A stretch of DNA of 64,000 nt from Fimbriosthenelais zetlandica (taxonomy: Eukaryota), in the NCBI GenBank assembly GCA_977030845.1, contig OZ365116.1:18786001-18850000 (forward strand), written 5' to 3'. Positions 15,027 to 62,700 of this stretch are shown here, piece by piece (position 1 is the stretch's first letter; each line of letters begins with the position of its first letter). The notes under the pieces are model-generated. The model saw only the letters and a program-made list of their open reading frames with translations. It was not told the DNA's origin and made no database searches. Made by a program: the position numbers and the translations under genes.

Positions 15027-15073
15027 CTGAAGAGGTACATGTACACGGCTGTGACGAGGCTGAAGAACAGCAC
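15027..15073 (-). CDS. TMEM135: TMEM135 coding exon 6 (47 nt): VLFFSLVTAVYMYLF(R)
   Basis: Acceptor cctttttatttccag|GTG, donor CAG|gtaaga, phase 0-2. Matches human VLLFCITAAMYMFFFR. The gene continues beyond the left edge. Confidence 0.92.
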
Positions 15074-18000
15074 CTGGAAATAAAAGGTAGAGATCTTATA
15101 TAAGCGAGAGGAAAACATAGGAGCTAAGAGGTTGAAATCCAACCCCCGAGCAGGCAATTATCAGGGACAGAATGAACCATATGCCATTCAAATGATGCCC
15201 TCAAACTGCTCTTTTTAATAATCTTCCTTTTTCCCTATGCTAACAAACGTCCATTACCGACACAAAGCCCTGTACCTAGGAGAGGAAGCATGCCAATTTG
15301 TTGTTTATTACCTGGACATGAGCCCCACCAGCTCTTAGTCACCACCAGCCCCAGATCAAACCAAATCCCCCACCCATTCACCATTCTCTCTTTTTTTATG
15401 AATTACAGACCAAAATGATCCCCCTCCCTTTTTGTTGAGTCCATGTAGAGGAATTGTTCTTGACAAAGAGCCTTTGCTTCAGGCCTAGCCAGACTCATGC
15501 TTATCCCTCAACGTGATTAGAACCGGTGGACCGTGATTATAGCCCTTATCGCAATCACCTCCCTCATCCTAGCTTCAGGCCCATATCAGCAGGGATTTTT
15601 TGGAGGCTCATAACAATCGGGACCTTTATTGTAGCAGCGTCTGGGCTATCTGAAGCTTTGCACACCTTTTTCTGGTTGATTACACAGGGCGAACAAGGGT
15701 TCATGTAGTCTGTGATCGCCAGGCCATGCAGCTCTGGTCAGTGAGCCATGAAAAGACAAAGTTGACAATGACTTAGAGACACGCAGGGTGTGGGAGGTGC
15801 AGGCCGGGGGTCGGCCTCTGTACATGATGCCTGGGTCACACTCACACTGATTAAAAACCGGCTCAGTATGTTCAGGTTTAAAGCCTGATCATAGCCCTAG
15901 GACATCACACTTGAACATAAAGGATGAAAATCAATACTTAAATTGGAAAGACATCAAATTAAATCTGTCATCACTTTTCAGCTTCTTTAAACACATTGCC
16001 CTTTCTTTAAAATGTAACTTTATGAACTGTTTCATTGCAAAATATTCGAACTATCCCCTTCACACTACACTTAACATTTATAAATCAAATACGAAGCTTA
16101 AAAGTTATTGACCAAGAGCATCCAGTGATGATATATTGAGGAAATAAAAGGGATTTTTTCAATTCCGTTTGGAGGCAGATGCCTTCCAGAGGAATTGAAT
16201 AAAACTATAAATTGATAAGTTGATGAGCTGAAGTGCCAGACTGGAACATTCCTCCAGCACGTCTTGGCAAGGACTTACACTAAGCCATCGAGTTAACCGA
16301 TTTATGGTGGGTCACGAATCTGGAGGACAAGAAACCTGCTTTTAAAATAAGTCTTCCATTGAGACTGGACAAGCTTAAAACGAAACTAACAGATTTATTG
16401 GAGACAATGGATGGCATTAAACACAAAGCAGGCGTTCCTGAACAACTCCCGGGAACACGGGAGTCGCATCTCACACCTGCGCTCCAGTCGTGACTAGACA
16501 GAATTAAATACCGAGATCCCAGCACAACCACGGTTAAGACAAAAGCAAAAGACCTCACATATTCAAGCGGAAAGAGCCGGGAGATTTTAATTGAAGCAGA
16601 CAAATCTCAACCATATTTAACTATATTATTTAACAGTTTTTCTGAGTGCAATCTCATGAGTGGACTTCATATAGATGGTAATACTTTATATAGATGGGAA
16701 TAACTGCCAATCATGTCCACTTAACATTGTCACTCCTTCCTATGGCCACCATTATATGTGTCAGCTGTCAGGCTATGAATGACATCTATTACCAGTCAAT
16801 ACATCATACTCTTCCCCACATTACTATTATACATGTGCTGAAATATACATGATTTAATGGAAGCCTGGCGAGCTGTGAGCTCGGACATTGAGTCCCTCAT
16901 GGCTTTCATCCAGTCAATGGAAGCTGACTGCCATCTAGATTTTATAAATCATAACAATATATAATCTCCTCCATACACTTCACTTGACAATGATGGACGT
17001 TACAGAGCCGGGTAAAAGCCATTATCATGTTTTAAGGTAACATTGTATGGGGGAAGTTTAATGCTGCTATGATCCGCTATTCAATAGGACCATGCAATGA
17101 GAATACTCGGATGCTTTGATACAAAATGGAATTGAAGTGATGCTGCCAACTGTAGTACGCTGATAATAAATGTACTAGAGAATACTTCACATTTAGGCCC
17201 GAAGAACGACTTGGCTCTGCAACAGGTGAATTGGCCCGATACAAGTCTTGACAAGAGTGGCCCTTTGTGTAAGCCTATTGGGAAACTCAACAGTTAAAAG
17301 CATTAGAGGCTTTCAAGAAATTATGTACTTGCGGGTGTATCTGCTGACTTGCATCCATCTAACACCCTATTTTATATAGTGTAGGGTCCCAACACGGGTA
17401 AGACAAAGACTAGATTACAAAACCTTGGTATGAAATACAAACCATGGCTGTGGATGTCGCCATTTGAATATCAATCACATTCCATTTGGCTCAATGAAAG
17501 CATGTGTAAATAACATCACAGAGCAATCAGATTAGGCCGCTCCAAACATCAAATACAATATTCACTGGCGTCCTCAGCCTGGGTATTAATTTCTCATGAA
17601 TGATAGATGTGATGGAACCATCGTGACTATAAACCTAGATGTGGAATTAACAAACTGCCAATTGGAAATTGAATTTTCAACCACAGTATGAGACAGGACA
17701 AAGCTGAGTTGAGCAATATTATAAAGCAGAGAAACGGATTAGCATAGACTTGCTCAGAGCTCTGGCGAAGAGAGAGACATAGACCTGATTGCTGACTCGG
17801 GGGAGTATTTGAAGAATGTTTGAAGAAGAAGTTAATCTCCAATGATAGCAATGACTTTGCTCCTATATAAAGCCAGAATAAAACTTCAGTTTGGAACCAA
17901 TCATGTATTGGTGCTTTTACTTCTTCATCTGCCCTGTAAGCATGCCTCGTTCCTAGATGAGCCTTGCCTCACCTCATGTAATAGTCCGGCATTGTCTGGT

Positions 18001-21936: not shown

Positions 21937-24002
21937 AGGTTAGGGCACGCCACCGTCCCCAGGGGTCGCACTGAATCTCTAGCAAATATGATGGATATTG
22001 GTGCCGTCTGGCATAACAATAACCCTGGCTTTTTTCTTATGACCCAAGCACACTAACAAATCCAAAGAACGACTAGAACAAAACGTCAAAAGTTTAACCT
22101 TGCAGAAAAAAATGTTGTCTTCATATTTCCTTTATGGATGCAGCTTACAAATTCATATCTTCATGCATAGGTCTATATTTTTGGCTGAATAACCAATGGA
22201 AGTACATAACCAATTATGCAAATATTAATAGTCAAGGAAACAAAATATATATGGTAATATAGGCCCTATGATAGTCATAAGAGAGAAGATATGAACCCGC
22301 CGGGAGAGTGAGTAAGTGAGCAGGATTGGTATTAACAGTAGGTCCCCTGTCCCTCTGGTGTCATACATTTACCTATGATTGAGTCAATCAATACTAGGGA
22401 AGGACTCCTTCCTATCCTCCTCCTCCAATTCCCAACAAAAATGATAGATTGACCTGTCAGAATGCCTCCCATCCTCGGTCCTCAAGTCAATTTCTATTTC
22501 GAAAACCCAAAACGACTACAGATCTATAGACTGAAGTGGTGAAGAAAAATCGCTTCACCAAATAGATTTTGTGAAATATATTATTTCCTGCAATTATCCC
22601 CAATACAGCATCAGCACCTCATGGGTCCACTACATATAAAAAATGCCCAATTATTATATCATTGGATCCATAAGAGAGATAGGAGGCCTGCATGAGAAGT
22701 GGGCTCCCATTTCTTATAAAAACTACCCTTAGCTTACACCAGAACAAAGGCTTGCTAAGGCATACCCAACAACCTCCTCTGGCCTCCTCTATGCCCGGAA
22801 ACATCCATCACTGTCGACAAGAGGAGTAAGATGTCAGTCAAAGCAAAAAGGGGCACGCCCATCAAACTGAAACAGTGATGGGGCTCGAGCTGAGAGGGTG
22901 ACACCTTGAAGGCAGTGCCACCCAACTCCTTCCCTCCCCTCTCCACATCCCTTCCTACCCTTACCAATCCTCCAGGCCATTTGGCCTTCAGTCTGCAGGT
23001 CGAGTTAGCCAGCATTTCTCACACCACACCTAATGAAGCAAGCAGTTCCGATTTTCCCAACCTCTTTTTGTTTGAATCTTCAAAAACTGAATAATCAAAG
23101 TTGCTTTGTCAAAAAACCTCTGCAAAAACAGTTCCGCTGGTTTCAACTTCTTTTCAAAACTTTGGTGAATTTTGTAAACAATTTGTATATGATTTAGTAT
23201 TATTCTCGCCAATTTGGCCGAGACACACAAAGACAAGACCTCTGCCAATCGAAACAACTATATTCACCAATATACAAAATCTAGGGCCAGCGATCAACCA
23301 ACCAAATGCAGACCTTGCTTGTTAAGACCTTGAATTATAAGAGAGTTGGTAGCATGTATATAACTGTCACGGTGGAGGGGGAGTATATAGAGTAAGTAGG
23401 AGGAAAGTGAGCTGGGTTCACCTGTCACCATCTGCCCACACACAGAGAGAGCCACTCTCCACTGATAGCAGCAATGAGAGGCGGGGGGCAGGAAGTGGAG
23501 ACATTATTTTGATGATTATAATTGACAGCTGTCAGAAGTTAGAGGGTAATGCTACCTTGCTCCTCGTCTACTGCCCCTGTGGTGAGCACACATAGAGCAG
23601 CAGTGAGCTGGCTATGTAATTGCTGTAGCACTGGCAGATGTAACAGCTACCAGCTAGGTAACCTATCATTAAAATGATGCTCTATACTCACTTCTCAGCC
23701 GCATGGCTTACAGCTCAAAGAGGAGTCAATGTGGCTTCTCTAATGTACAACCTCAATCAACATCTCACAATAATAACATATATAGAAAGAAATAATAGAG
23801 AAGTAAGGAAGAAAACAAATGAGCAGAGACATTGAAACAGAATATGCGTGCCACCTCACATTATGGGTGGTACGGCTCTGCTTTCCACACCAATCAGAAA
23901 TCAGACTTATCAATTGACATCAGACTTAATATAACAAGGCTGATGATGTGGCCCATCAAACACTTCCAGAATAACTTTATAGTCTTATGAATATATAGTT
24001 TA

Positions 24003-24197: not shown

Positions 24198-24202
24198 AAG
24201 AG

Positions 24203-24236: not shown

Positions 24237-24304
24237 TTCTTGTACTACTCTAAATGGCACCTTACAATATACAAGTAAGGGAGTTAGAATAAATAAGCAG
24301 TTGG

Positions 24305-26124: not shown

Positions 26125-26190
26125 TTCTCCATTCCAAAGAGGTTTGACGATTCCACGGAATGCAGCCATTCGATACAGCGTTTCTGTTGC
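26125..26190 (-). CDS. TMEM135: TMEM135 coding exon 5 (66 nt): ATETLYRMAAFRGIVKPLWNGE
   Basis: Acceptor gttttgtttcttccag|GCA, donor GAA|gtatgt, phase 0-0. Matches human [22 protein letters not shown]. Confidence 0.93.
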
Positions 26191-29100: not shown

Positions 29101-32100
29101 ACTTTAAGCCAGGGACACACCAGATGGGAATAAAGTCAAACAATGGTCCAACCATTACCAACTAGACCTATAGCACAATAGAGTAGAGTTGCTCACTGAT
29201 TTGCTCACATATTTAGTGTATGGTGGCCTCATGATATCACCCATACATCAAAAGTGACCAGGAGCCAGCAGAGAGATCCACGTGAGCAGAGTGAGGCTGG
29301 TGATATTGCGGGTGAGTGCCTGGCTAGACTGTCAGAGTAGAAAGGTCTGCCGTCATTTCTGACAATTCTTTCATATTTCATGTTGTTCGCTAGGGACTGA
29401 CCCAAGCCATACAACACAAGCTTTGTCTTATAAGTGTCATCTTTTGAATAATGCATTTATATAAAGCATACTGGAGATATATCATTGATATAATGCTGCA
29501 ACTAAGAGAGAAATGGACTTGCTCATAAGAAGTGGTTTCTTCAAGGTTTATTTACCAATAAAATAAGTTTAAGAGTAAGGACCATGTTTTATTTGCTTAT
29601 TTTTGGCATTTCTGTTGTTGCAGAATAATATTGATATGTACCTCACCCTTACAATATTCTCAGTTTCTGACTATATGACTCCAGGTCAAATTTACTGTCA
29701 CTGGAATCAGTATCAGAATGAGGACATGAGCATGAGTGTGTCTGAGACATGATTAAAGTATAGAAGCTCGTGCTGGGATACTCAGCATGCCATCATAGCA
29801 CCGTCACCTGGGTGTTAAATGCACCAACAATAAACTGAAGGATGAAAGCACGGTACCAGTCCATCGCCTTTCATGCTCCAGAAGGGCGATCGTTTTCCGG
29901 AGCCAGGCTGAATTATTCAGATGTCCCCGCTTTGATTGCAGTGTGTGTGTGTCGGTGGGTGGGGGTCGGTTCATGGCTTCTGTCCTTGGCAATCCCGCCT
30001 TTTCAATCCCCCCACACGCTTTCTTTCCTCTCCTTTCTACCACATCCATCCTTGGCTTCCCACCTGCGACTCCTATACTCCAGCCACCCACCTATTCCTC
30101 CAGTACACTCCAGGGAGAGATAAAAGGCGTTGGAGCTGAGGTAATAGACTTGTTCTTGCCAGGAAAGACCACCCTTGTCGGCAAGGATTACATGGATGCA
30201 AGTTTCAATTATGATAATGAAATCTAACGTCAAGTTATACTATTATATTGCTGTGCTTTGGGGCTAGTGTATACTTTAATGCTATTAAGATGTCATTATG
30301 TAATTCATCTTAATTTGAGCATATGACACCTTAAGATAGTGCAACGTGTAGATTGCCATTTAATATTCAAAATATGGGTATAGGAGGTAGTTCTAGTCTA
30401 GTATAAGAGGGTGGTATCATTCCTCCAGTGTTTGGCGTGCCTCCAGGGTGTCAAGGGTCAGCGGTGCGCCTCATTAACCTGATGCTGAGTCACACAGGTG
30501 AGATGTGTACTAAATGTCAACCACGACCATCTCCTCCCAGTCTCCAGCTTCCTCCCTACATGCACTCACATAGCCCACTAATCTAAATCATTATCATAAC
30601 CTGTGCATCTCCAATAGTCCTCTACAGCATAAGTAAATCACTTGATTTTTTCAATCTCTGGAGGCGGATAATTCAAGAAAGGACATCATCTGGTATCATT
30701 ATTTTGTTCCACCTGCAGAGAGACTCCTGCATTCCTCTAGGGAACATGAATACTACCCTACTTCATTGAACACTTAGTACTATTGGTCAAAAGTAGGTCC
30801 TGGGTTAATTGACCCAGGAATGGCTGACTCACCCACCAATGTTAAAGTTGCATGACCCGGGCGTTTGTTTTGCACAAATCAATTACAGGACTTTCTCTTA
30901 CAAGGCTTACCCAGTCCCTCTCAGAGAAATGCTTATTAAAACCACTCTTTATTGGCTCAAGAACTTTTTCCGAGAACGCCAATTTCCTTTGAACAGAACT
31001 CAGCATGTATGGGGGAAGACAATCGGGTCAATTCATTCCATGTTGCGTATTATCTAGGACATATTTCAATGACCGAAATGTTAGAGAGGTAGAGGAGATA
31101 TACCTGCATGCTTAGAGACTTGCCAACTGTTTCACTGAGGACTCTCTCCCTCAGTCTGTGAACTCTTTCTCCCCATCCCTCCCTCAGATCCATTCCCTCA
31201 ATTGTCCATCATTAGGGTCAACCAGTAGCAATCGATAGTGAGAACATAGTTGACCTCTGCCAACCAATCCCCTATATTGAGCAGATACCTCCCACATGCA
31301 TCATCCCATGTGACTACCTCAATGTTACTGTCTCTTAACACGGTTTTACATATGAAAGCTTTGAAGCAGCAGACCTCACCACCTTTCATCATCTACACAA
31401 TAGACCCTCTCTATACCACCACAAATGCAACACGAGCTGTTAAAAGTTGGAGCAGCTAATTTGCCCAACAGAAAACCCGATCTTCCTCCCTTTAGACAGG
31501 AACTATTAATTCACCTGTCGGCGCTCCTGCACTAAAATGTCCATGATCCAAAGCCTTATACATAAAAGCCCAGAGGAATAGGCGCTAAGCACGCAAAGTC
31601 AGGGTTAGTCATCCTCCACTCTCCAGCCCGACTGCCCCCAATTTAATCTGTTTATATTAAAAAGACCTTTTTGCTGACAAAGCTGCTTTTCTAAACCGTT
31701 CATTCATCATAAGGCTCAACTTAAAATCTTTGACAAGCATAGTACATATTTGAGTGCTTGGAAGGAAAATACCATATAAGAGCGGCACCGTAAAAAGGAA
31801 CACAGATCTGCATTTTATCAGAAGTGATTGCTTTTACTTGTTGCTGGAAAAAGTGCATGCAACAGCTGTGTCTTTAAACTTCCAGTAATGTTCTTTTTCA
31901 TTTGGCTGATAACTGAGTCGCTAGCGAGCAAAGTACAGACATACAGTAAGGGGGACATTTATTATTGACAGAAAGCACAAGCCAGAAAGCAAGGTTGAGC
32001 TGAAGCAGAGGCAGAGGCAATGTAATATGGTTATGGTAGAAGGGCCGGGCAAGGCACTGACTTGACCTTGCTTCATATTGGTGATGGGATCTGAGACCAT

Positions 32101-43169: not shown

Positions 43170-43310
43170 CAGATAGACTGATGAGTAAATTTTGAAACTC
43201 TCTTTCATGCCATGTAATGCAACATCCAAGACGGCTTTAAGGCACGATGGTTCCCATGTATGGCCCAGTTCATAACAGGAACAGTGAAGGATTTTGCTGT
43301 AGGCCGCCAT
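43170..43310 (-). CDS. TMEM135: TMEM135 coding exon 1 (141 nt): MAAYSKILHCSCYELGHTWEPSCLKAVLDVALHGMKESFKIYSSVYL
   Basis: Strong similarity to human TMEM135 N-terminus ([23 protein letters not shown]...ESLKIYAPLYL). Start context gccaacATGG; donor CTG|gtaggt; phase 0. Confidence 0.95.
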
Positions 43311-43440
43311 GTTGGCATGCTGCGGAACACCACAACATTGATTTTCAGCCAATCAGCAGCCAGTATTCTATTCACTGCAGCACTACGATTCCTACCACGC
43401 TTTCCCGCGCAGATACAAACTCACATGGACTTGGAAGTGA
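43302..43440 (-). promoter_or_regulatory. Putative TMEM135 proximal promoter / 5' region
   Basis: YY1-type motif overlapping the start codon (CAACATGGCGGC on minus), CCAAT box agccaatca at 43347-43355, and an ETS-like GGAAGTG near 43434. Typical of housekeeping promoters. The TSS cannot be determined from sequence. Confidence 0.45.
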
Positions 43441-44448
43441 ACAGAGAGCCTACCAGATGATGGCAAATGGTGGCAGAAACAAGTGATGACAGGACAGAGT
43501 CAAGACAATCAAAGAATATCAGTGTTTAAGCTTAGTTCCTTCAAGCAGCAGTAGGTTCTTTGCCTGGTTTAAAGATTTGTAGGCTGTCTTGTAAATAGCC
43601 AGAGCCTATCCCCTTCCAGGAATGAACCACAGACTGGTAAATCACAATTATAGGCCTAGGAATTATTATTTTAATCTATATAAAATATAATTAATAGGCT
43701 ACATTGGTATTTAACATTTAGGATTGGGTTCTATAGGTCCTAGAGTTTTCAAAAAGGTATAAATAGCATTTATAACTTCAATCCGAATAATTAAAAAAAG
43801 ATAGGGCCTCTGTAAGTCGTTGATTTAATTTAATCTATTAGGGGCCTATATAGGCATAGGTCAACCGATACGCCGACGAGAGGAGGTGGTAAAGTGTCGA
43901 TTCACTCCAAGTCCTACACAAGCCGGTACAAACGACGTGGTGTTTTGTTTAACTTTAAGATGGACGGGAAAACAAACAAGTTAGCTCTCGCAGGGAGGGC
44001 ACCAAGGAAGGAAAGGCACACTTTACCGCGTACAGGCATTGCTTCTGACATATACCGGCATATAATATGGATCTTATGTTCCATTAGTGATAAACACCAG
44101 CTCCCCTAAATAAGATTAAAGCTCTCAGATCTTTGCAAAAGTCACGTCTCTGCATAAACAAGAATGACACTTTCATTTTTGTTTCTATAAGCATAATCAG
44201 GCCATAGGCTTAAGATTACTCAATCTTTGGGGACATAGGGCCTAAATTTCCAGATGAGTTCGTTTCATCTGGATTAAGTTCATGCCACAGTCCGAATCAA
44301 ATACAATGTTAATGCACACAACAAACTATACACTTTCTATGTCAAATATACACAGAGATGATTAATTTACTACACTGTTCTCCGTCAAATATGCCCTCTT
44401 GTCCTAGTTTTTGAGGAGATCCCCCTGCCCCCCTTCGGCGCGCGGTCT

Positions 44449-44511
44449 GCCCTTTGATGTGCCGTCGGCGCCCTTTGAACTCCTGTCGGTGTCTTTGATG
44501 TTTGCCTGTGG
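44449..44511 (+). repeat. Degenerate 3 x 21-bp tandem array, each unit containing a TCF/LEF-type CTTTGAW site
   Basis: Units gccctttgatgtgccgtcggc / gccctttgaactcctgtcggt / gtctttgatgtttgcctgtgg. Confidence 0.75.
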
Positions 44512-47500: not shown

Positions 47501-50500
47501 ACACAATGAACTCATCTTTTTCCGCCCACGGAATTACACACGTGTAAGCTCGAAACATTCACTCGAATACAAAGGGGATTCACAGTTGTCTAATTTGTCC
47601 ATTGGTTCAGCATATGTATGATATGTGTACAGAGCCATGACTGTCAGTCAGAATGACTGGTTTTTTGCCTTAATAGCTTTGGTCGTTTGGTTTCTAATAG
47701 CTTCTAAGAAGACCAATCACAGCACATGGCTCTTGTTGTTAAGACCCCTGCTCATCTATTTTCCGCGTCCCCCAGAAGAACGTGTAGAAATCTTATAGGG
47801 GGTGAATATTCACATTATCTGTCTATGTATAGGGGAAGGGCCCTGTATTTGAGAGCAGTAAATTGAACACAAATGATTTCTCACAGTCACAATAACTACC
47901 AGAGGGTCAACAATATTTCACACACAAAATTACACACAAAGAAACAGCATTTTCCTTTTCAGGACCATATGTGAAATTCTTCATTACAAGAACCGTGCGT
48001 AACAGAGACGAGAGGGGCATTTGACAGTTTAAATGGGTTCTGGAGAGGGAAATGAAAGGAGAGTCTGCAACGAAAATTACACCTGTGCTATATAGTTTCC
48101 CTTTATGTACTTTACCATTATTCCCAGGGCTTCCCCAGAAACCCTACCCAGTCCACCCACAAATCCCACCCGAGGGCAAATCCCAGGGAATATCATTGTC
48201 AAACAAAACATATTATTGCAACCTTTATCTGGAGTAGCCCCTGAACTTATTGACAATCCCGACCTGGATATGATTTGTTATGGCATGTATTAGTTAGCTC
48301 AAGGCACCTGCAACCGTGGACGTTCAAGCTTGCCCAAGCGTGCCCACTCAGTGTACATGGGACTTTCAAAGGATCATTTGTATTTTTATTTCATCTTATT
48401 GGCCATTTTCACCCATTTCTTTCCTCTCCCTTGACAACCTGGGTGACCGTTTTTACACGTTTGCCTCAATAGAAGAAACTTAGGAGGACAACACATTTTC
48501 CACCAGCAGTTTGTAAAAACATGACAATCATTAGATAACACTACTACTGCAGGATCAGCGTTGCATAATTATGACAATTCTGTCATGTTAAACAGGGTTA
48601 AAGATAATGAATCAACACACAATGTAGATCCCAGAATCTAGATACAATGTTGCATAAGTCAACAAATGACTAACTTAATCATAAAGGGATAAAAAAAACT
48701 GGGCTTCCCCTAAACACGAATACAGCAGAAATACTAGAGAAAAAGATGTTTAAGAAATCAAGACATCAATTTGACCTTTCAATGATACCGTATGACGGTT
48801 ATAACTCATTATAAAGATGAAATAATGAAGGTCTTCTCGTCATTAATTTAATCGAAGATCTGCACGTCCTAAGCATAGAATAAATCAAGATAACAAAATG
48901 ATCCATTGACCCAAATACTCCCCATGATAATGTATTTATCCATCGTTTCCCTTCTTCACATTCCACCTATCAACCGATTTGCTAATTTGTCATCATTTGG
49001 AGAAGCAACATGCATTTTTTTTTTTACTATTTGCCAACGTATATTCTTATCGGACACGACCATCATGCTGTCCTCAACCAGCAGTTGTTCTACGAGGACG
49101 CAATACCGCCAGATAATGACTCTAAACAAGGCACAAGATTGGAAGAGAAAAGAAAAAAACATTGTGTCCTTTGACGTTTGCGTGCCTAGCAGCAATATTT
49201 TGCATAGCTTCATCTGACAGAAGTTTTCTGAAACGAACTATTATATAGAGGCATGGAAATGAACCATAAGACAAGAATAAAGATGAGAACCGAAATATGA
49301 GCATAAAGTCAACAATAGTCCGATACAAGGAGTCATACAGGCAGACGTATACATAAATCACTTGTACTTGGTACCCAAAACATCGAGGGTAAGAACTACA
49401 GATAACCCAGCTAGAGATATCAATTGCCTTGTTGGTTATCTATAAGTAACAGTCCTGTCAAAACCCTCATTGATTGAGAGACTTTTCTATGTCATTTTAT
49501 TTCCTTAGGCAGATGGATTTTCTGATTAGAAGACACTGCCCTTCAGTATATCGACGATACCATGACTTGTTTGTTCAATTCTTGATGTCAATGTATATTA
49601 ATTAGAGCAGTATATGATAGAGAAAGGATAAGATTAATATTCTTATTATCCACTGCACCTATCGTTATCTTAGCATAACTGATATGTAATAGACTAAAGG
49701 TATTATTCAAAACTAGAAATTGGGGAATGTTCAACCTCTATGCCTTATCATGTTCTACAAATTCCTTTTTGATCCTTAAAGCAATTTATAAGAATCTTAT
49801 GGTTCGGTATGGCGGGATTCCTTTTTATTGAAAATCAATGCGTTCCAATTAATTTTAACACAGATAATGCAACAAGAGATATGAAGGATTTGATTGGAAA
49901 ATCGTTGCAAGTAAATGATTGAGTAAGAGAGATTATGCTCCCATGCACTTTTTCCCGGGGGTAACTTCATGGATCCCATTTCTATAGGGTCATTAAATAA
50001 AGATTAAACCATCCACTTCATTGTTTGCAGCCACACAAACAAATGATTGAATGATGCCAACCAGAAAACTCATTCCTGTGATAAGAATTCACTTGGAAAG
50101 AAGTGAAAAAAGGGAATAAGGAAAAGTGTAGCAAGCCGCTCGGGATATTGACATTCAATCATGGGGCAGAATGGGACATGCAATTGTATAGAGAAGTGCC
50201 CAGTCATTCAGCAAACAAGTGTGAGTGAGCGTAACTATTGCAAGCTACAAAAGTATCCATCTCTCCATCAGAGGCAATTGCAGCAGACCAAGAGATGCAA
50301 GCAATCAAATGTGACGCCATAAACTGGCTTCACGATTGGGAGCCACTCTTACAGTGAATACCCAGCATGCAATTCTCTGCTCACAAAAAGGAGTTTGATT
50401 TTCCCTTCTCAATATTTCACACGGAGAAACATAAAAATGCCATTGTCCCTTTGGCTTTTCTTCCACTCGTAACGAGGCTCGTGTTTCAAATGCTTTATTT

Positions 50501-53500
50501 CTACTTGTTTGCACTTGGTGTCGTAAGGAGTATGCCATTATCCAATTATGAAACCAATGCTTTTGTTTGAGGCTTCAACAATGCAGGAAGGACTCTGGCT
50601 TCCATTGCCTGATTCATTATTCTCTCAACACTTGTCCTGTGACTTCAGGGGTAAAGTATAGGGCTCCACATATTATTGAGTAGAATAATCGGCCAGCTTA
50701 TCTACTTATCTCATTTTCCTCCTAGTTTCAGCACATGTAGAATATGTGTCAATGAGTGGAGACGGAGCTATTGTTAGCCACCTTGCTACATTACTGACCC
50801 CCTTTATCTGTGCTTATCAGCGTTAAATGGATCTGAGGTCCGCACTGACGCGTACATATCATTCCACCTTCCCATCACCATACTGTTACACAAGTATTAG
50901 AGGTGAACTCACTGAAGAAGATCTCACACAAAAATCAAGACGAGAACATCAGAAGGAACCGACAACTAAAAGGTGTTGACTATGATAGACGTATTGGACA
51001 AATAGGTCATAAGGCATTGTGTCTTTACGTTCCAATCTTCTCACAATTCATCTAAAGGAGGAAGCTGGGTAGAAAAAGATGATTTCTTAATGTATACTAC
51101 ACGTCAGACCTCTATGACAATGCTTCGTCTCTTCATTGAAGCCGTGAAGGGTGTTTCTATTTGGATTACATTTTAGCGAGTAGGCCCCCGGGGCTTCTCC
51201 CAAAAGAAAACATGATCAAAGGACACCGCCTATATGTCGTACTGTAACTTTTATCGCCAGTCCTAACAGGGAGGTCACCGTTGGGGCGATATTTCCCGAC
51301 ATTTTCCGCTGATAAGATTTGTCAGTATTTGATTAATGCCTCGTCCGACCAGGTGAGTCAATGGAATCGGACATGTAGCCTCCTTAAACTTATCCCAGTT
51401 GACTGATAGGCAAACATTGGTGCCGAGGCCGAGATAATTGATAATATGGCCTCCACATCTGCGGGATATGAACCTTGGACGCTAACACATCCACGTTAGA
51501 CAAATACCTGGCCAAGTATAGGAATAAACAGTACACTATAGTCTTTCTGTTCCCTGGGTGAGGTCCGCTTTTGAGATATATCTCCAATCAACCTCAATCA
51601 TGCAACGACCTCAATTTCCCTGAATTTCCAATTAAAATTTCTAATTTTTAATTATGATTTTTTACCTCGATATGACCCAGATATGGAAGAAGGACCGAGG
51701 TAAAAAAGATGTGGAGCCATGATGAGATTAGTGGGCTTGTTATGAGAGTTAACCATACATGTGTATGAGGGTGAGTGTTGGTGAGAGAGGTCGTGTCATG
51801 ATTAATACCATCCTCAGCCATATGTCCGTTAATTGATTGTGGGTCAGGACGCCAAGCACAATGATGATGATGTCATTTTTTGTCCATCTACAGACAAAAA
51901 ATGGACAATTGCGCCTCTGTGTGGTTAAAATCAAACATGGCGTGTGTGATGGCCGTGTATGCATATGGCCATGAGTAGCGGAAGGGGAGACAGGGGGAAT
52001 GGGAAGGGAAGAGGAATGAGAAATATTTGTTATCAGCTGCGATTAATAACAATGGAGAGTAATCCGGATGTTGATTCAGAGCAATATTTTTCATTGTTGC
52101 TTGCATTTCTAATGTTTCACGGGAATATGATCCTGTAGATACATGATCAACTAGAATGGTTGAGGCAAATTTTAGGGAACCACCCTCTCCTTCATCTCTC
52201 CTGTTCAAGGTTCTTGAAAGGGAACTTTGTTGTGGATGTTCCTGCCCCCAAAAATATTGATGTTCATAACAATCATTTAAAGCAATACATTATATGAAGG
52301 TGACAGAGGGCTCTAAAAGGGTATAATGCCTGCCTATATACCTATATACGCAGGGCCTTACTTTCTCACCAATTAAAGTGTGCCTCAGGGCCTCACTTTG
52401 CGCTTGAACGTTCAGAGTTATTCGAGCATGAGCACTAGCCCCTGGCTTTGTCTCATCGCCCAAAATGTCGTTGGCTTTCAGTCCTTTCAAGAAATTGTCG
52501 TCTGCTGGTTTCCTTCTTTCATACAACAAGACGCGAGTTTCTATAAAGCTTCAGGGTCCTGTCCCAGATATCTCAAGATGAGGTGAAAGTATGTTTCTTT
52601 TCTTTAGGAATATATATTGCAGTCACCTTAGCAAAACAATTTTCTTCACAAAAAGTGTTCTCAAAAAGTTATGAAGCCTTGGACGGTTTATGGTCTAAGG
52701 GCTTTAACTTGCCTCCGTGTAGTTAGAAGTGAGTACCATAGAGGCAAGCTTGTTTGTTTGCCTCATTACCCTTTGTAGCACTATCAGGTATTTGCTGACA
52801 ACCCTCCACTCCTACATGCAGTCACAAAAGGGCCGTCTATTTCACCCTTGTGAAAGATGGAAAATGAATATCCCCTTTTGTTAAAGGAGACCTAATTGGT
52901 ACTCTAACTCATAATGGTTTTTTGATTAACACTAAACATGTGAACCATCTAATTTGGACTCCACATGAACCACCCAGCCCCGCGCCTCTCTCACTCATGA
53001 CTGTTCTTCCAAGTCGATGAAGCAGAAAGTAGGATTCCTTCCTTTTAGAGTGGGACCTTTTTGTAATGGGAGGCATGCACAATGATAGAGATAACTCAAC
53101 AAAGGTCGGCTCCCCACCACATAGGATTCTTTCTTTTGACCCTTCTCTACCCTTGAGTCCTGATTTTCCGGGTGAAAAGGCTTGTGACACTCTGGTCCAT
53201 TCTATTTACCACTGGTGAAATGCTGCCCTAAGGGCAGGATCAGTCAATCCTGAAATCACTGCGCAGAGAATTTAATGGACTGCATTGTTCATACAGAATA
53301 TAAATATGATTGTCTATTATATAATTCATATAAGTTCCCATATATTGCGATAAGAGGAGTGTATGCAGAATGATTAGACCCAGTAAAACTGTTCAGATAG
53401 TTTAACGCCTATATATTGAGTAAGTTAAACTTAAACCCAGTCCTACCACATGAAGATTTGATGGCGTGATTGATGAGATTCCTAGAATGCTGGCATTTAG

Positions 53501-56500
53501 TAGATGAGATTAGCGTTTAAGGCATGTAAACTTACATGATGCAAACTAACTTAGAATCAAAGTTACCATGGTGATGACTACAACAAAGCCTGTCAGACCT
53601 CTCAAGGTACCCATTCTATTATATCGATCCGCTTCCTTTGTTGATTTCCTATGAAGTAAATTAATCAAGTGCCAATAGAAGCAGTTTTTATGCCTCTAAC
53701 AAATGACAATGAATGTGAAGTCTGAGCAGTATAATTTGTGAATAATTCAGTACGACAACTAGCTAATGTTTGAAGATATCCTTTCTCCTGGCCATGACCC
53801 GGATGGTGAGGAGCCATAGAGAGGAGTGAGGAGGAGCCTCTTCACCATTGAGGAGCCATTAGTTCACTGACTATTGATACCTGTACTTGTAAAGGCTTCC
53901 AATGAGACCAGCAAGAGTCAAACAAGAGCAGCTTGACCTCTCCCCAATACGTGGTCCGCCTTCTAACCTTACAACAACCCATGTAGGACCCATGCATCAC
54001 TCATGGACATGAATTCCATAGTACTTTCCATTGCGTTTCAGACATAGTGCGCATGGCGCCCGAATGTCAAGCACTATAGTACATCTTAACAGAAAAGTCA
54101 GTTATGTGTGTTCCAGGCTTAAAAAGTCAACTGCTCACAATCCATGCCTTTCTTGACAAGCCCTAAAAACAAAACATCTCCAGACTAGCAGTCTTGATAA
54201 AATACCTTGGCAAGATCAACAATGTGTGCGAGGAGCCTGGCATTTGAGGAGCAACTCGCGGAAAGGCCCGAGCAGGTCAGGAACTGACAAGGGAGTTAGT
54301 TCCAGGTGTGGGTCTGGGTGTGGGATTGCCTCCAATGAGCAGATCTCCAGTGATTAGGTGGGGAATGGACAGGTGTTCCTATGATAGGTAGAAAGACAGG
54401 ATAAATACATGGCTGCTTCAATTGACACGCTTCTGGCAGCCATTAGACAGCAATGCTGAGAGGAGAGGGATATTATTTTTAAAGGTTAACATTGCCGAAC
54501 GAATGTTGCCTGCTTTCTGGCTCGTACAGATTGTAAAGAGGCGTGTAATTGATTCCAAATGTCTTTAAAAAGAACTTCTTCCCTTGTACCTCTAATAATG
54601 GATCACAAATGTGAGCTTGGATTTACTTCCAGACAGATTCCCTTGGAGTCTATGTTAGATTTAAATTTAATCTCAAGTAAGTTTAGTATATAAGATGCAG
54701 GAGGCGCCTTTAATAGAAGCTCATTATCTGTGCTGGTCCTCCCGTGGATCTCACACCTGGAGCACACCTGGACGAGGTGGGGCAGTAACCTGCTGGATCT
54801 CCTCCATCTTACTCCACTCTATACTCGACCTTTAGGTCGTTTATCATAGAGCTAAGAGAATCACAGCACGTTATTAAAGTTATTGATGAATTGATTGAAT
54901 TCATATAATGAAGTCCAAAGTCCCACAGAGGTGCTCCATACTAAATTAAAATAATACTGTCAGTGTTAGTGCATGGAATATCATCCTTCTATTTAGGCCA
55001 TGAAATTAGTTATACCACACATTGAACTGATAATATTCCAGATGAGTGTCTAATTCATCTTTTTCTCTGGCTTTTCCTCCAGGCAGGGTGGGTATCAGCC
55101 GGGAAGGTAGTCTGGGGCTGGGAGAGACGGGAGGATTGTTGGGTTGAAGGGTTGAGGGCAGAAGAGAAAGTTTCGCACGTGTTGTTACTTAAGGTGATAA
55201 CCCCTGATGGCCTATCACACCTGGTCTCACCTCCAGGGTGGCAGGGGTGAGGGCTTTACCCTCCAGGGTGGTAAGGTGCCCATGATTCACATCATTACCT
55301 CCTGAGTAAGCTTTAGTCACACCCCAGGAACTGTATGATATATATGTACGTCTCTCACCACTAATTGTCTATATCTATATTGAGTAAATCATCTCAACCC
55401 ATCATTCATCTGCTTATTAACATTATTAAGTTTCACTGTAGCGCATCTAATGATCACCAACATTCATTAGGCCCATTCCTACTCAAATTATTAAATGATC
55501 ATGTACTGAGCAACATGGGCCATCAACTGAACTTATCCAATACCGGTATATATCATCAAGTAGGGGTAAAGTACTGTTATTATTATTTTTGTCTCCTATT
55601 TAATTAAATGGAGCCACATTGGCGGTAACAAGAAAATTAGCTCACATCTAATTAATCAAGTTAAATGATTTGGATTTTGCAAAATTACTTCCGACATCTG
55701 GCAACAGGTTTGCATACAAGCTCCCAATAAGTAGGCCAATTATGGCTTTCTATTTAAACATTGACTGGATGACGCAGACTTTTGAATCATAAAGATATAA
55801 ATTTGAGAAGTCAAAAATAACACAGTATGCGGCCTACATTTAAGTGCAGCAATATGATTCATGGATGGGTATAAATCATGTTTTTTCTATAGGCTTTCTA
55901 CTATGTTATCATTTCTACATGTGGACCATGGCAAACAAGGAGGGAGTATGTGTGTTGTGGACATACATTCAGTTAACTTGTCATTCAATAATCAGCAAAC
56001 ACACTCAGTACATATATACCTCAAGAGGCACATATTAAACCAAGCCTTGGGGGATCCCAATTAGACGCAAGATATATGTGGATCACACTGAGTTATCTGC
56101 TAATTAAAAGGGGGCCCAGAGTGAGGTCGGTATGAACCCTTCCTGACAACTTTTATATCCTCTCAATTTGTTCTTGGCTCTAAGTATAAAAGGCGCACTC
56201 AGGAAAAGATGTTTAAATGTTATTCGGGACAGGTAATGTTGCAATTAGGTAGTATGTATTCCTCTTAGTTGAATGCCATCATATTTCACTCTGTCAATCT
56301 ATGGTTTAGTTGATATGGACTCTCGTTAATTCTTATCTCAAATAAAAATGCTTTTCTGCCAGTGATTGGGTTGGTATAATAATCTTAGAGAAGTAGGCCT
56401 ATTAGAAAGAGCCCATAATACCAATAATGATGTCAGACTTGTTATTTTTAGCATAGATGCATGTACCAATGCAATCAGCTGAACATTATACAACATATTA

Positions 56501-59500
56501 CAGGGCCAAATTCCTTTCCACTAGTATAATAAGGTACTTCAATACGGGGAATATATGCTTGTTCCGTGACATTTAAAATACATATTGGTGCCCAGGTATT
56601 TGGGTACGAGTGCACACTTGGCTTTCCTGTCCACTTTCAGGTGACCTTTGCAGCCTTTTATGCACATTCCTGCTACTTGATCCTTATGTAGTTGGTCAAA
56701 TAAATCCTCCTGATCCCCAGCTCTTAGGTCACAAAAGCTCTGGTCCCTTGCGTCTTAGAGTGGCTGAAGAGGATTTATTTGTTAAAGTATATATATAGGG
56801 AGAGAGTATAAGTGTGTATCCAAGCTGCTTACTTTTGGAGAAGATTTCAATAACGTTTCAAAAAGGCATTATTCCCAGTCCGATCCCGGGGATCTAATCA
56901 GAAATAATTGATAAAAGTAAGTGAGCTGCGGGTCGCTTGTTGATGACATTTTATGATAAGTAAGTCCAGGATGGACACTCTACCAGGGTCACACATACAA
57001 ACCTGTGATAAGCCTTTCTTCCATTCCCTATTTCACCTCCTATTCAGGCGGGTATTTGCCCGAGGTGGCTGAGTTAGTTTGAGTTGGCCTTGGCAAAGAG
57101 ACCAAAGTTAAAGCAAACATGCGTCCTTTTGCCTCTACACCATTGCCTGGCTTTTGTACTAGCCTTATAGTTAATGTATTTCCCCCACTCGAATTGACTG
57201 AGTCTATGTGTTCGTGCGGTACAATATAGAATTCAATTAAGGCTGAAGGCTCCTCCAAAGAGAAGCTTATACAAGGAGTAATGAACCAGCCAAGCTTATC
57301 CACACAAACTTACCAACACTCCCCCGCCACACCATTTCCCAATTGGTAATAGGCAATCAAACATTTCCACCAACTCCTCAAGTGGTGTCCAAAAGACACT
57401 TTTCCTTCAAACATTTGGCATCGATGAACCATTATTAAGAACAATGTTATGGATAATAATCTTGTTCCGTCGGAGAATAAAAAACGAATACGATAATGAG
57501 TTATTTTGTCTTTTGGTCAGTTTACTTATACTTTACAATATTTACACTCACACTCTAGCTGCATGTTTTCTCACGAGGCAGGGCAAGTCTGAGAGATATA
57601 ACACTACAGCAGACACAAAAACTTACTTCAGGTCGTCATGTTGTATGAATACTGATAAGAAATAGCTTCAAACTGTTGAACTATCGATTATGATAGAGAT
57701 AAATACAGGTTTGTACAAACAATATCCAATCATTCATATTATATATTATCACGTCCCACACAATGATATACATTATATATGGCAGTTATTTTCAGTAAAC
57801 ACTTCAATTCGACCGTGATTTCCTGATTGTTTCCATGGTAATATCATGATGGGGGAAGTTGTCATGATAAAGAAGCTAACATTTAAAATGTAAGGGAAGT
57901 ACTCTTACATTTTAATGCAGTCTACAACGATATGATATAGAGTGATAGACGTATATAGATTTACCACATAGTACAGTTGTCATGTATTACATTGGTCTTC
58001 CTGCAGCATATGGCCACAATGATATCTGTGAGATAAGTTGACTGATAACAATGTCATGTCTCCATCGTGGTTGGTATATAAATTATAGAATCTATCATCG
58101 TTATTGTGGGTGTTCCATAAATGGATCAATATAATACAATTCATTCTGTATACGTCAATTCTTACTTACAGAGTGACATTGAAGCAGTCATGGTATGAAC
58201 GTTTCTATGCATAAAAATTGGCCCCATTACATCTCAACTTTAGCTTCATCATAAACTGGATCCTATCTAGAAAGACCTATTTGCTTATTAATGACATCTT
58301 AAGGGCCAGAAGCAGAACACTGTCTTAGGGATTTGAGCTAGACCTAGAAAATTCCTTATGCATAAAAGTTGTTGGCAGTGTTGTTGACATATTGATGTAG
58401 TAAGCTATCAATGACAGAGCTGACGCTGTGTAAGTTCCCCCCAGACATGCATATACATGATGTTTACCTAAAATGATGGACTTAAAAACCTCTCCTGCCA
58501 TACATATAAAAACCATTTGTTATCTCGCAGATACACAACCTCATGTCATTTATCTCGTGCACACATGTCACCCTCTCTCTACCACTATATGGGACATTCA
58601 CTCACATGACGCTAAATTACAGCCATTTATTCTGTTTCTATTATTTAAATGGAAGTTTGCCAGAATATATAGGTTATATTCCCTCAAGACATCTTCTGAT
58701 TGACCTGTGAGCATACTCTGGATTAGGTAACCGCAGGGATGTTTGGTACAAAGGTGCCGACCCGTGGATAAAAAACGCTAGTGACCCATCACAAAGAAAT
58801 TTCATTAAAATACTTGAATGGTGTTAAGTAGACGGGAGAGGATTAGGGGTTTTGAAGTGAATCAGGAATAGAGTAAGAAGGTCTGAGGCCTGAAGCTGAT
58901 AGAGCTATAGGAAGGTAAAGTACATAGCTGTGGGGGGCTGGTATCGGGCAAACACTCAGGTCTGAATGGGTGGGTGGAAGGAGGATTTGAGTTGCAAGGG
59001 GTGGAGGACAAAGTGGACGGGGTGAATAGGGGAGTTAAGGGAGCTTATGGCGTCCTGTACATGTCAGAGCTATCATGTCAATGTGTTAAATGGTGCACAC
59101 AACAGGTTTCTCATTGAAGATAATGTCACCAATGATTATACACTAAGTCTCGGCCAGTCTCTGTTGTACCTGCTGGATTTTCACACCGTTAAAAACTTTT
59201 GTCGATTTTTCCCATCAAAAATATTAAATTTCGCATGTACCCGGAGCATTATGTTTCCACCATACAATAACAACCGATTCTGGTTTCCATCTGAGAGCAA
59301 TTGGTGCACTTTCGTGACTAAACGGTTGCTTCTTCAGAAAATCAGCCGAACCGGAAAATTACACTGGTTGAAAAGTGATGCAAATAGATCAGCGGACTTG
59401 ACGAGCATTATCACGTTACCTTATATGATAAAGGCAAGTGATGGAGCCAGGAGCCCGACATAATGCCTTATGCAAAGTGATAGTCAACGAATCTTCAAAT

Positions 59501-60930
59501 CTATACCACCGAAAGTTTCTACCAAACACACACACCTATAGTCACCTTCAGCAACAGTCTGATATCTTCAGAATTAAGCCAATCATTTTACAAAAGATAA
59601 GACATGGTCTAACCAAAACTATTGCTTCCACAACTTTTTCAGTCAAATAAAAACCAAAAACCTTTATCGTTTAGGTGCATTATAAAAAAGCTAATACACA
59701 TAATAAATTGTGGGTATTGGGTGATGTGCCAGGCATGGACATGAGCCTGTATGGAGGAGGAATGGCCGGCTTGTGAGGAATGATTGTGTGTGTTATAATT
59801 GAAACTAATGCCTGCTGAGTGTGAGGCATTTTGGAGTGGACTCTGACACTAGGATATGAATCCATATTGACCAGAGCTTCTGTGTATGTTGACACTCGGC
59901 TATCAAGCATTAGGCTTTATAGGCCAGCCATCAAGTCCCTCTACACACATACGCTTCACTAAGGCTCACCGTTATTATCAAAATGTTCAAGCACTCTTTC
60001 ACTTCCCCTTTTCTTCCCTTCTGGGACAAGTTAAACATTTCCTGTAGAATGTCTAATGTCGAAACGAATATTATTTCCGACTGACAAGCAATTCTGTTGG
60101 AATGATGCATAAAGTCATTTCTGATAGTCCCCAATCTAATCGGTGCTGCAATATTTTTGTTTTGGATCTAGCAGGAAATAGGCTTATTGGAGCTTTAAAG
60201 CTAAAATCACATGGGGTTATAATAATAATAGCAGCAATAAACTCATCAGTGCAATCCTGCGAGCCTAGTGAGACATGCCCAGCCAGTGTGAAAATGGAGG
60301 CCGCTTCTATTCCCCATCCCAAACACGTTGTAAATCACTATAAAAAGTGGGTACAGAGGGACTTGTCGGCCTGGTGGCCATGGGGGCGCGAGAGTTAACA
60401 GAATGGGTGCCAGTTATGACCAGTGAATGAGGGACATTACATGGGGAAATGGTGTACATTTACAGAAAAGTGTGATTCGTGATAATGTATAATCCATCAA
60501 TGCTACACTCACAGTCGAGCTGCTTCCTTCTATTCTATTTCAATCTCCTTCAGCATTCTAAGCACAAGCACATCTTTTCACAGCTATATATAATAAGGAC
60601 CCGTGTTGGCTACCTTGTCGGTACTCTAAGTGGATTCATGTCGATTCTAAACGTAGTCATTTCTTTTTATCAATAGATTTTTCTCAAATGAAATGTGTAA
60701 AAGTTAACTTCTTGTAGGTGTTCAACTATAGCTCAAACTTGTCCACTGATTATTCTAACCCAGACAGTACATACTGACCATAATAATATTACATATGCAC
60801 ATATTTTACATCTTTACATTAACTATACACGAATATTATGCTCACGTTTTATAATACATTACATAATAATGCTTCAATAAGGTTACATCTTTAAGTGTAC
60901 ATAAATGCCGTGGATTAGAAGGCAATGCCT

Positions 60931-62700
60931 TTAAACCACCGTCTCACTTCCCAGTCCCTTTTTGCATCGTTTATGCTTGATATCAGACACCCTAATGGGT
61001 GTAGTTGTTCTTGAATGTTCTCTAGATATTGGGTATTGTAGTTTACTTTGATGAGTTGGGTGGTATTGGTATTGTGGAAAGTTCGGCGTGCTCTTCCTCT
61101 CAGTCTTACATCCACATATCCTGCGGATGAAAGTCCTCCAGGCATTCAGAGTCTTAGTACTCCATATCCACATGCCACTCGTGATGCCCACCACTAGAGA
61201 CATGAAGATCTTCAACATGAAGATTTCTATGTTGGGTTTGTTGGTGCTTTGTGGGTGATACCACATGGCCCTATTGGTATATTCATAGAAGTAACACGCT
61301 ATGACACAGGTAGCGGGGACTGTATATAACACACTGAACACACCTATTTTGATCATTAGAGCCTCCAGTTTGTCAGTCTTCATCCCATCATTGCGCACGT
61401 GGCGCCTGATTCGGAATAGAGACACTAATCCTGCAAAGAGGAAGGAGGTGCCCAGGAGGAGGTAGACGAAAAGAGGAGCAATAATGAAGCCCATGAGGCT
61501 GTCTGAGTTTTGGTTGCCCACATAGCACATGCCAGTCAGTTCATCAGCATCCACGTTTCTCATAACGAGGATGATGATTGTTTTCACTGCGGGGATGCTC
61601 CAGGCAGCAAGGTGAAAGTAGCTCGAGTGTTGTTGCATTGCCTCATGTCCCCACTTCAAGCCAGCAGCCAAGAACCAAGTTAAAGTAAGGATGACCCACC
61701 AAATACTGGAGGCGGTGCTGAAGAAGTAGAGGAGGAGGAAGACTATAGCACAGTCAGTGTTGTCCAGGCCCTCCTGGAGAAGGTACTGTCCAGTTTTATC
61801 ACAACTGATGGAGTTACGTCCAGCGATGAGGCGCACAATGTAACCAATAGCACAGATATTATAACAAAAAGACAGCACAATGATGGGTCTCTCTGGGTAC
61901 CGGAAGCGCTGAGAATCCACAAGGAAAGTCAAAACTGTGAATAAAGTTGACACGAAACAAAGGCTGGCCCAAATAGCCATCCAAATGTCAGCGAAGTGCT
62001 TATCTTTCTCACTGAAGAGGTCGTCCTGGCCACACTTGAGAGCACAGCGACCAGTGCGGTTAACAAACATATATTTTTGTGAATTTCTGTGGAAGGGGCA
62101 ATAATTTGGTGCCCCACCTGGGGCTGCACCTGGGTTGTAAGCCCCGGGCTGGTAGGCGCGGTACCCGTCCCCTTCAAGGGGGATCTCTTTATCTGTTCCT
62201 GGACCATCCATGCACATATGTTGATGATCGTTACGTTCAGGAAACTTAGAACAGTTGAGTGCTTCAGGCCAGGGGAAGCCGAACTCCTGTAGAACCGGCT
62301 GACATCTCAGTCTCACAGATTCACACATAGGTCGACACGGGCCTATAGACTCCATCACCTTCTCTGTACACATGGGGAAATAGACTGAACAGAGGAAGAA
62401 CCGGAGCTGATTGGAGCATCCATACTGGATGAGGGGACTGAACGTCTGAAGTTGAAGGTCAGCATCTTGTTGTGTCTCATGACCGACCAGGTTAGGCATC
62501 CCCGTCACGTTATAGCCCAGACCTTTACACAGGTCCACAGCGATGGGGTCACATTGCCTAACGATGGCTGCCCCCAGACCCGGAATCTCCTGGGCTGTTG
62601 CCATGGAAACAACGCCCTGCATGAGAAGCATGAGCAGCAGCAATGACGACGTCATCGTTGTCTTTGTCAGGGTTGTGATGTCAGGTCCGTAAACGTCCAT
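60931..62700 (-). CDS. FZD4: Frizzled-4 family Wnt receptor (class F GPCR), single coding exon, ~589 aa from the first ATG
   Basis: Signal peptide (..[21 protein letters not shown]), 10-Cys CRD (CDPIAVDLC...WPEALNC), linker [12 protein letters not shown] matching human FZD4 NDHNHMCMEGPG, and 7TM with [10 protein letters not shown] and [30 protein letters not shown] (nearly identical to FZD4). KTxxxW Dishevelled motif (KTLNAW) and C-terminal GSETVV as in human FZD4. The ORF track starts at a TTG (62748); the first ATG is 62700 (gtcATGG) and a second candidate is 62655. Confidence 0.97.

Follow-up and report, generated by a model that had tools for sequence, protein, structure and literature searches.

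Frizzled-4 and TMEM135 as neighbors in an annelid genome: a probable case of ancient bilaterian microsynteny

A 64,000-nucleotide stretch of the Fimbriosthenelais zetlandica genome (contig OZ365116.1, positions 18,786,001 to 18,850,000; called the window here, with its first letter as position 1) carries the Wnt receptor gene Frizzled-4 (Fz4) directly beside the beginning of TMEM135, an unrelated gene encoding a Tim17-like peroxisomal/mitochondrial membrane protein. Both genes are located on the minus strand in tandem, with Fz4 upstream of TMEM135, and 17,621 bp separate the stop codon of Fz4 from the ATG of TMEM135. The two genes are adjacent or nearly so in Annelida (the window and Owenia), Nemertea (Lineus), Mollusca, Echinodermata (Apostichopus), and, according to the literature, Vertebrata. 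The comparison of gene positions gives good support for an adjacency inherited from the protostome-deuterostome ancestor or an even earlier one. Taken as a whole, retention of the ancient adjacency through a genomic regulatory block arrangement explains the observations best, with a probability that we put at about one in two. The original prediction for this DNA, made without database searches, had given positions 60931, 43310, and 15027 and a gap of 17.6 kb, and all of these proved exact. The features of the window are as follows.

Positions 60931 to 62700, minus strand: Frizzled-4 coding sequence (CDS), one exon, identified by open reading frame (ORF), Pfam, best matches, PDB match, and gene tree.
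Positions 43311 to 60930, no strand: spacer of 17.6 kb that separates the stop of Fz4 from the start of TMEM135, without recognizable gene in Pfam, Rfam, tRNA, tblastx, and blastn searches.
Positions 43170 to 43310, minus strand: TMEM135 exon 1, 47 codons, with ATG at 43310 and a GT donor; phmmer match to TMEM135 proteins, PF15982 at 47.5 bits.
Positions 42561 to 42688, minus strand: TMEM135 exon 2, 128 nucleotides (nt); exon model, PF15982 at 42 bits.
Positions 42092 to 42181, minus strand: TMEM135 exon 3b, an alternative copy of exon 3, 90 nt, of the "CGIP...ERKDR" type; profile match, AG/GT boundaries, same phase as exon 3a.
Positions 41387 to 41479, minus strand: TMEM135 exon 3a, 93 nt, of the "ERKSR" type; profile and exon model.
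Positions 40473 to 40506, minus strand: TMEM135 exon 4, 34 nt; profile and splice sites.
Positions 26125 to 26190, minus strand: TMEM135 exon 5, 66 nt; profile and exon model.
Positions 15027 to 15073, minus strand: TMEM135 exon 6, the last within the window, 47 nt; profile and exon model.

In the ORF listing, the Fz4 frame extends from position 60931 to 62748 on the minus strand (605 codons; stop codon at 60931-60933) and contains in-frame ATGs at 62700, the end given in the original prediction, and at 62655. The ATG at 62655 stands directly before a signal-peptide-like stretch and yields a protein of 574 amino acids (aa), which is also the length of the closest database relative (90% identity); 62655 is the more likely start. 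The translation contains the Pfam Fz domain PF01392, i.e., the N-terminal cysteine-rich domain (CRD; E 4.8e-34), and the Frizzled seven-transmembrane (7TM) domain PF01534 (E 3.8e-127). The KTxxxW motif reads KTLNAW, and the C-terminal tail is ETVV; a juxtamembrane KTxxxW motif and a PDZ-binding ETVV tail at the C terminus are typical features of FZD4. The CDS consists of a single exon. This is also the case for Fz4 of Owenia, Lineus, Apostichopus, amphioxus, and Pecten, in which the range of the gene is equal to the length of its CDS.

Every named protein among the best 120 matches of a protein search with the window Fz4 was a frizzled-4, the best named ones being spiralian (Owenia, 66%; Lineus, 64%). 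When compared with solved structures in the PDB, the window protein matched human FZD4 at 730 bits, FZD1/7 at about 490, and FZD3/6 at about 340; for the CRD alone, the scores were 216 bits for FZD4 versus 158 bits for FZD10. The comparison with FZD9/10 was made on these CRD scores, the maximum-likelihood tree being composed of 34 Fz4 proteins without FZD9/10 paralogues. In this tree, the window protein groups with Platynereis, Capitella, and further relatives (support, 99/98) inside Spiralia, with molluscs, nemerteans, Lingula, and Owenia outside this annelid clade and with deuterostomes and ecdysozoans as separate clades. The gene tree tracks the species tree, as expected of orthologues. On its sequence, the receptor is thus a Frizzled-4 orthologue, and by the position of this protein in the tree the genome is that of an annelid. 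Two objections that had accompanied the original prediction thereby lose their force: the receptor does not group with Fz9/10, as FZD4 is the best match both for the whole protein and for the CRD, and the DNA is not of vertebrate origin, so that synteny with human is not trivial.

The TMEM135 exons were located by searches with full-length TMEM135 proteins and with a profile derived from these, and the exon boundaries were set by reading splice sites. The part of the gene present in the window comprises six coding exons and one alternative exon, all bounded by AG/GT, with an unbroken frame and in colinear order on the profile. Exons 1 and 2 each exceed by themselves the cut-off of 27 bits for PF15982, the N-terminal cysteine-rich TMEM135 domain. 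Approximately codons 1 to 169 of roughly 455 are covered, and the region of the C-terminal Tim17-like domain PF02466 falls outside the window. Since the profile search revealed no later exon (past profile position 174) at window positions 1 to 15026, TMEM135 runs off the start of the window.

The claim that no recognizable gene lies between Fz4 and TMEM135 was borne out by the Pfam, Rfam, tRNA, repeat, and tblastx searches. Among the 20 ORFs of at least 70 aa in the spacer (the longest with 138 aa), just two showed Pfam matches, both below threshold (zf-AD and a poxvirus family). The zf-AD match is located in a 73-aa ORF at positions 45705 to 45926 on the minus strand (E 2.3e-4; 21.8 bits, compared with a cut-off of 28) and covers the first CxxC pair only; no zinc-finger ORF is found near it, and it is probably a chance match or a decayed fragment. 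No Rfam family at gathering thresholds, no tRNA, and no long repeat was detected anywhere in the whole window, and tblastx of the spacer against the orthologous regions of seven species gave no similarity. The spacer may nonetheless hold a non-coding or lineage-specific transcript. About 1.1 kb upstream of the TMEM135 ATG, at positions 44449 to 44511, three TCF/LEF-like cores (CTTTGAT/A) occur in a short 21-bp tandem repeat, for which Tandem Repeats Finder (TRF) reported a period of 21, 2 copies, and 80% matches. The motif CTTTGAWS shows no enrichment over the window as a whole, with 17 occurrences against an expected 14.7.

The positions of the two genes in four further genomes were as follows.

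Owenia, CAIIXF020000011.1: Fz4 at 8,719,668-8,721,407 (plus strand), TMEM135 at 8,743,041-8,827,721 (plus strand); tandem, gap of 21.6 kb.
Lineus (nemertean), OU342996.1: Fz4 at 12,953,580-12,955,352 (plus strand), TMEM135 at 12,986,962-13,046,825 (plus strand); tandem, gap of 31.6 kb.
Apostichopus (sea cucumber), CM075718.1: Fz4 at 5,647,417-5,649,051 (minus strand), TMEM135 at 5,680,980-5,734,478 (plus strand); head-to-head, gap of 31.9 kb.
Amphioxus (hybrid assembly), CM027643.1: Fz4 at 297,363-298,997 (plus strand), TMEM135 at 3,557,012-3,578,555 (minus strand); 3.26 Mb apart.

In Owenia, no called gene is present in the 20 kb inspected of the 21.6-kb gap. The RefSeq proteins are numbered consecutively in Lineus (XP_064629514 for Fz4, followed by XP_064629515-17 for TMEM135) and in Apostichopus (XP_071819529, followed by 530-532), so that no gene is expected in the approximately 12 kb of each gap that lie outside the inspected stretch. 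For Mollusca, adjacency or near-adjacency was read from annotation order in Patella, Pecten, and Littorina: the Patella locus tags are consecutive (SNE40_019485 and SNE40_019486), and the Fz4 and TMEM135 protein numbers are two apart in Pecten, for which the numbering is the only basis, and in Littorina; in Ylistrum, they are 15 apart. RefSeq numbering is an imperfect proxy for distance, and only consecutive or near-consecutive numbers were used as evidence, large gaps being weak; this is seen in Dreissena (11 apart in GenBank, about 1,150 apart in RefSeq) and in Tubulanus (8,291 apart, with both genes on one chromosome). In the crinoid Antedon, the numbers are about 1,030 apart, and the two genes are probably not neighbors.

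On a coarser scale, Fz4 and TMEM135 share a chromosome or scaffold in 21 of the 23 species compared. As a proxy for a shared record, equal length of the longest contig carrying each protein was used, which applied to 20 species (Owenia, Capitella, Lineus, Tubulanus, Patella, Lottia, Gigantopelta, Littorina, Babylonia, Pecten, Argopecten, Mizuhopecten, Ylistrum, Pinctada, Mya, Mactra, Ruditapes, Dreissena, Apostichopus, and Antedon); amphioxus was added by its coordinates. In several species, the common scaffold is small (Lottia, 419 kb; Ruditapes, 578 kb; Capitella, 708 kb; Mizuhopecten, 1.49 Mb; Ylistrum, 2.4 Mb). The records differ in the crinoid Anneissia and in the millipede Chamberlinius, where the genes are found on different scaffolds. 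The two genes are thus not unlinked in most of the other lineages compared, which had been named beforehand as an outcome that would speak against the claim.

The human genes are presumably oriented head-to-head and about 80 kb apart. For their adjacency in vertebrates, we relied on published gene orders. A clinical paper describes ME3, PRSS23, and TMEM135 as deleted together with FZD4 (PMC8306649), in line with the statement of the original prediction that FZD4 and TMEM135 are neighbors in human. A module of TMEM135-RAB38-CTSC-GRM5-TYR-NOX4 is common to human, chicken, frog, and turtle; FZD4 of medaka adjoins RAB38 (PMC12294924).

Two genes placed at random on one chromosome of 21 to 37 Mb would lie within 32 kb of each other with a probability of approximately 0.002 to 0.003 per species, a value that holds per pair and is not genome-wide. 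Fz4 and TMEM135 lie within this distance in two annelids, a nemertean, and a holothurian. Given how improbable chance proximity is in each species and how widely the proximity is observed (annelids, a nemertean, a holothurian, molluscs, and vertebrates), shared ancestry of the pair is the one explanation that we consider reasonable, and the earlier suggestion of a linkage dating back to a deep bilaterian ancestor is supported. Independent origin of the adjacency in spiralians and in deuterostomes would account for the differing orientations as well, i.e., tandem in spiralians versus head-to-head in Apostichopus. It is also in keeping with the separation of the genes in amphioxus and probably in crinoids, and with the fact that no outgroup with the pair was found, the TMEM135-fused gene of the jellyfish Sanderia being a non-Frizzled G protein-coupled receptor (GPCR). 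Such a double origin would, however, require the rare chance proximity twice for one and the same pair, and a single small inversion is sufficient to account for the difference in orientation; we regard it as very improbable.

With common descent as the starting point, a single switch of orientation separates the tandem layout of spiralians from the head-to-head layout of the sea cucumber; as no outgroup with the pair was found, neither arrangement was assigned as ancestral. The adjacency has been lost in cephalochordates (amphioxus) and in a myriapod (the millipede), probably in crinoids, and perhaps in the palaeonemertean Tubulanus. The expected adjacency in several phyla was found, without any intervening gene seen where coordinates show the pair as neighbors; its orientation varies, and the linkage has been lost several times. 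Beyond TMEM135, the next gene is a TIR gene in Owenia and FAM228 in Pecten, and differs again in Lineus and Apostichopus; only the Fz4-TMEM135 pair has been kept, not a wider neighborhood on that side. In amphioxus, an enoyl-CoA hydratase gene is located just upstream of TMEM135.

These patterns bear on the question of why the pair has persisted. The simplest answer would be neutral survival: the ancestral adjacency was kept because rearrangement is slow in the lineages concerned (annelids, nemerteans, molluscs, echinoderms, and vertebrates), and some of the many thousands of ancestral pairs persist by chance. This would agree with the loss of the link without obvious consequence in amphioxus, the millipede, and probably crinoids, with the lack of detected conserved non-coding DNA, and with the way in which the pair came to attention, namely, as a post hoc pick noticed for its match to human. 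On the other side, the pair has been kept in at least three deeply separated lineages, yet the next TMEM135 neighbor differs in every species examined, unlike what would be expected if the whole region were inert; the adjacency has outlasted a change of orientation; and a promoter-capture link in human, described below, points to regulatory overlap. Neutral survival is a serious alternative, although we consider it less likely than not.

The explanation that we prefer is that Fz4 and TMEM135 form a genomic regulatory block. Long-range enhancers of Fz4, a developmentally regulated gene, would be located in the spacer of 17 to 32 kb and in the large introns of TMEM135. A break between the genes would then deprive Fz4 of these elements, and TMEM135 would be no more than a passive bystander. 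Enhancer function does not depend on orientation, and the tandem arrangement could therefore have become head-to-head through a local inversion that left the genes together. The 17.6-kb spacer of the window is, accordingly, a candidate site of regulatory DNA. Several observations make this arrangement the best fit. The spacers are too long for a shared promoter, and the adjacency has outlived the orientation change. Moreover, the introns of TMEM135 are very long where the pair is kept, with gene spans of 85 kb in Owenia, 60 kb in Lineus, and 53 kb in Apostichopus, and with an annotated range of 224 kb in Pecten (isoform X1); in the window, the first six exons alone extend over more than 28 kb. 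TMEM135 of amphioxus, where the pair is broken, spans only 21.5 kb, but this is one case only, in which further differences between the genomes are a confounder. Finally, in a promoter-contact map of human trabecular-meshwork cells, FZD4 is the target of a glaucoma locus from genome-wide association studies (GWAS) that is labelled TMEM135 (lead variant rs2513214; bioRxiv 10.64898/2026.03.12.711121); this promoter-capture link from the TMEM135 locus to FZD4 is the single direct hint of such enhancers. The co-deletion of ME3, PRSS23, FZD4, and TMEM135 in human (PMC8306649) was likewise counted toward a cis-regulatory cause. Judged from gene order and these published data, a cis-regulatory cause of retention is plausible.

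The long spacers also bear on a further explanation, co-regulation or a functional tie, in which the genes share a chromatin domain or regulatory elements because both products are required jointly, and selection preserves their common domain. Coordinated transcription of neighbors is one of two causes discussed for conserved pairs by Irimia et al. (PMC3514665), and both genes lie on one strand in spiralians. Spacers of 17 to 32 kb and the change of orientation, however, speak against a shared promoter or read-through, and no functional link between the Wnt receptor and the Tim17-like membrane protein emerged from the literature found. We therefore rate a tie of this kind as unlikely.

Three points weigh against a regulatory block. 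No conserved non-coding sequence was detected by blastn or tblastx between the window and any orthologous locus, the relatives perhaps being too distant for this. Even for the closest relative among these loci (76% protein identity, flanks of 10 kb), non-coding matches did not exceed those of a reversed-sequence control. In addition, the loss of linkage in amphioxus (by 3.26 Mb), the millipede, probably crinoids, and maybe Tubulanus implies that any constraint is not absolute. Lastly, Fz4 encodes a receptor and not a transcription factor, as would be typical of regulatory blocks. The most far-reaching version, a bilaterian-wide block with Fz4 enhancers residing in the spacer and the TMEM135 introns since before the protostome-deuterostome split, is put forward tentatively, as possible but less likely than not. 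If it is true, human disease variants mapped to "TMEM135" (glaucoma, perhaps retinal vascular disease) would act through FZD4, and in lineages that broke the pair, e.g., amphioxus, the control of Fz4 would have been built anew and TMEM135 would have become more compact.

Three further sequences were not counted as support. In the 76%-identity relative, no TMEM135 exon is present within 10 kb of Fz4, which is uninformative with spacers of 17 to 32 kb elsewhere. A 7TM-TMEM135 fusion model of the jellyfish Sanderia malayensis (from EukProt) was considered as a cnidarian case and rejected, as its 7TM part is not Frizzled; the model combines a non-Frizzled seven-helix receptor with a TMEM135 that lacks the first exon, which suggests that a different GPCR gene is located just upstream of TMEM135 on the same strand. 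The deposited FZD4 model of the Chinese hamster, Cricetulus griseus (710 aa), in which the FZD4 seven-helix domain is followed at the C terminus by a PF15982 segment corresponding to TMEM135 exon 2 (residues 644 to 689), was not used either, as it requires both genes on one strand, unlike the presumed head-to-head layout of mammals. Possible sources of this model are a chimeric prediction, an error of assembly, or a rearrangement in the cell line.

TMEM135 itself shows a peculiarity in its exon structure. Exons 3b (90 nt) and 3a (93 nt) of the window form a homologous tandem pair of equal phase, both bounded by AG/GT, which bears the signature of mutually exclusive exons. Annotated TMEM135 isoforms of Lineus, Pecten, Littorina, and amphioxus come in pairs that differ by having the ERKSR or the CGIP...ERKDR type, and the genomes of Owenia, Lineus, and amphioxus contain both types; in the extracted loci, the pair lies at 14831-14920 and 30971-31054 (L003), at 15180-15269 and 23090-23161 (L004), and at 12021-12089 and 12173-12262 (L010). 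In spiralians, 3b precedes 3a; in amphioxus, 3a comes first. The alternative exon-3 pair seems to predate the protostome-deuterostome split. Apostichopus TMEM135 has a duplicated exon 2 instead, with two copies in the DNA and in annotated isoforms, and the isoforms of Amphiura differ over the exon-2 segment. A TMEM135 intron of Apostichopus also harbors an annotated C-type lectin gene, which runs on the opposite strand (L006, 41976-43279).

FZD4 is the gene that is deleted or mutated in familial exudative vitreoretinopathy. Should the cause of retention be regulatory, human non-coding variants assigned to TMEM135 would be candidate FZD4 variants, and the elements could be sought in annelids, molluscs, and echinoderms, whose genomes have the locus in a compact form, with spacers of 17 to 32 kb. 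The one orientation switch and the several losses can serve as natural experiments for the bystander model.

In the literature search, no paper linking FZD4, TMEM135, and synteny was found. Neither gene is named in the main text of Irimia et al. (2012, Genome Res 22:2356, PMC3514665), the supplementary pair lists aside, or in the supplements of Robert 2022. Simakov 2013 counted only blocks with three or more orthologues, a size that a pair by itself does not reach. In human and other vertebrates, the 11q14-type order is ME3-PRSS23-FZD4-TMEM135-RAB38-CTSC-GRM5-TYR, and FZD4 and TMEM135 are neighbors there as in the window (PMC8306649). The vertebrate arrangement differs in that the gene beyond TMEM135 in Owenia, Lineus, Apostichopus, and Pecten has no Pfam family pointing to RAB38. 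It differs also in orientation, which is tandem in the annelid window and presumably head-to-head in vertebrates.

Genomic regulatory blocks such as those of Otx and Islet (PMC3514665) and of Shh (PMC3364491) resemble the pair in that a developmental gene stands beside an unrelated gene with long introns; in addition, the Fz4-TMEM135 adjacency has been kept despite an inversion, and a human GWAS locus at TMEM135 is assigned to FZD4. In contrast to these blocks, which are defined by conserved non-coding elements and enhancer activity, the Fz4-TMEM135 arrangement is known here from gene positions; its target would be a receptor rather than a transcription factor, and it has dissolved in several lineages. 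The closest parallel is the set of nearly 600 conserved ancient microsyntenic pairs of unrelated genes described by Irimia et al. (PMC3514665), for which co-regulation, or regulatory blocks with enhancers of a developmental gene inside a bystander gene, have been proposed as causes. Like those pairs, Fz4 and TMEM135 are unrelated genes whose tight linkage has lasted for more than 500 million years in distant lineages of animals, and they combine a developmental signalling gene with a housekeeping-type gene with large introns; unlike that data set, the evidence comes from newer chromosome-level genomes of annelids, a nemertean, molluscs, and an echinoderm. Conserved gene neighborhoods as a phenomenon are known, and Fz4-TMEM135 is a new, or at least newly documented, case, which adds to the roughly 600 ancient unrelated neighbor pairs one that includes a disease-relevant Wnt receptor.

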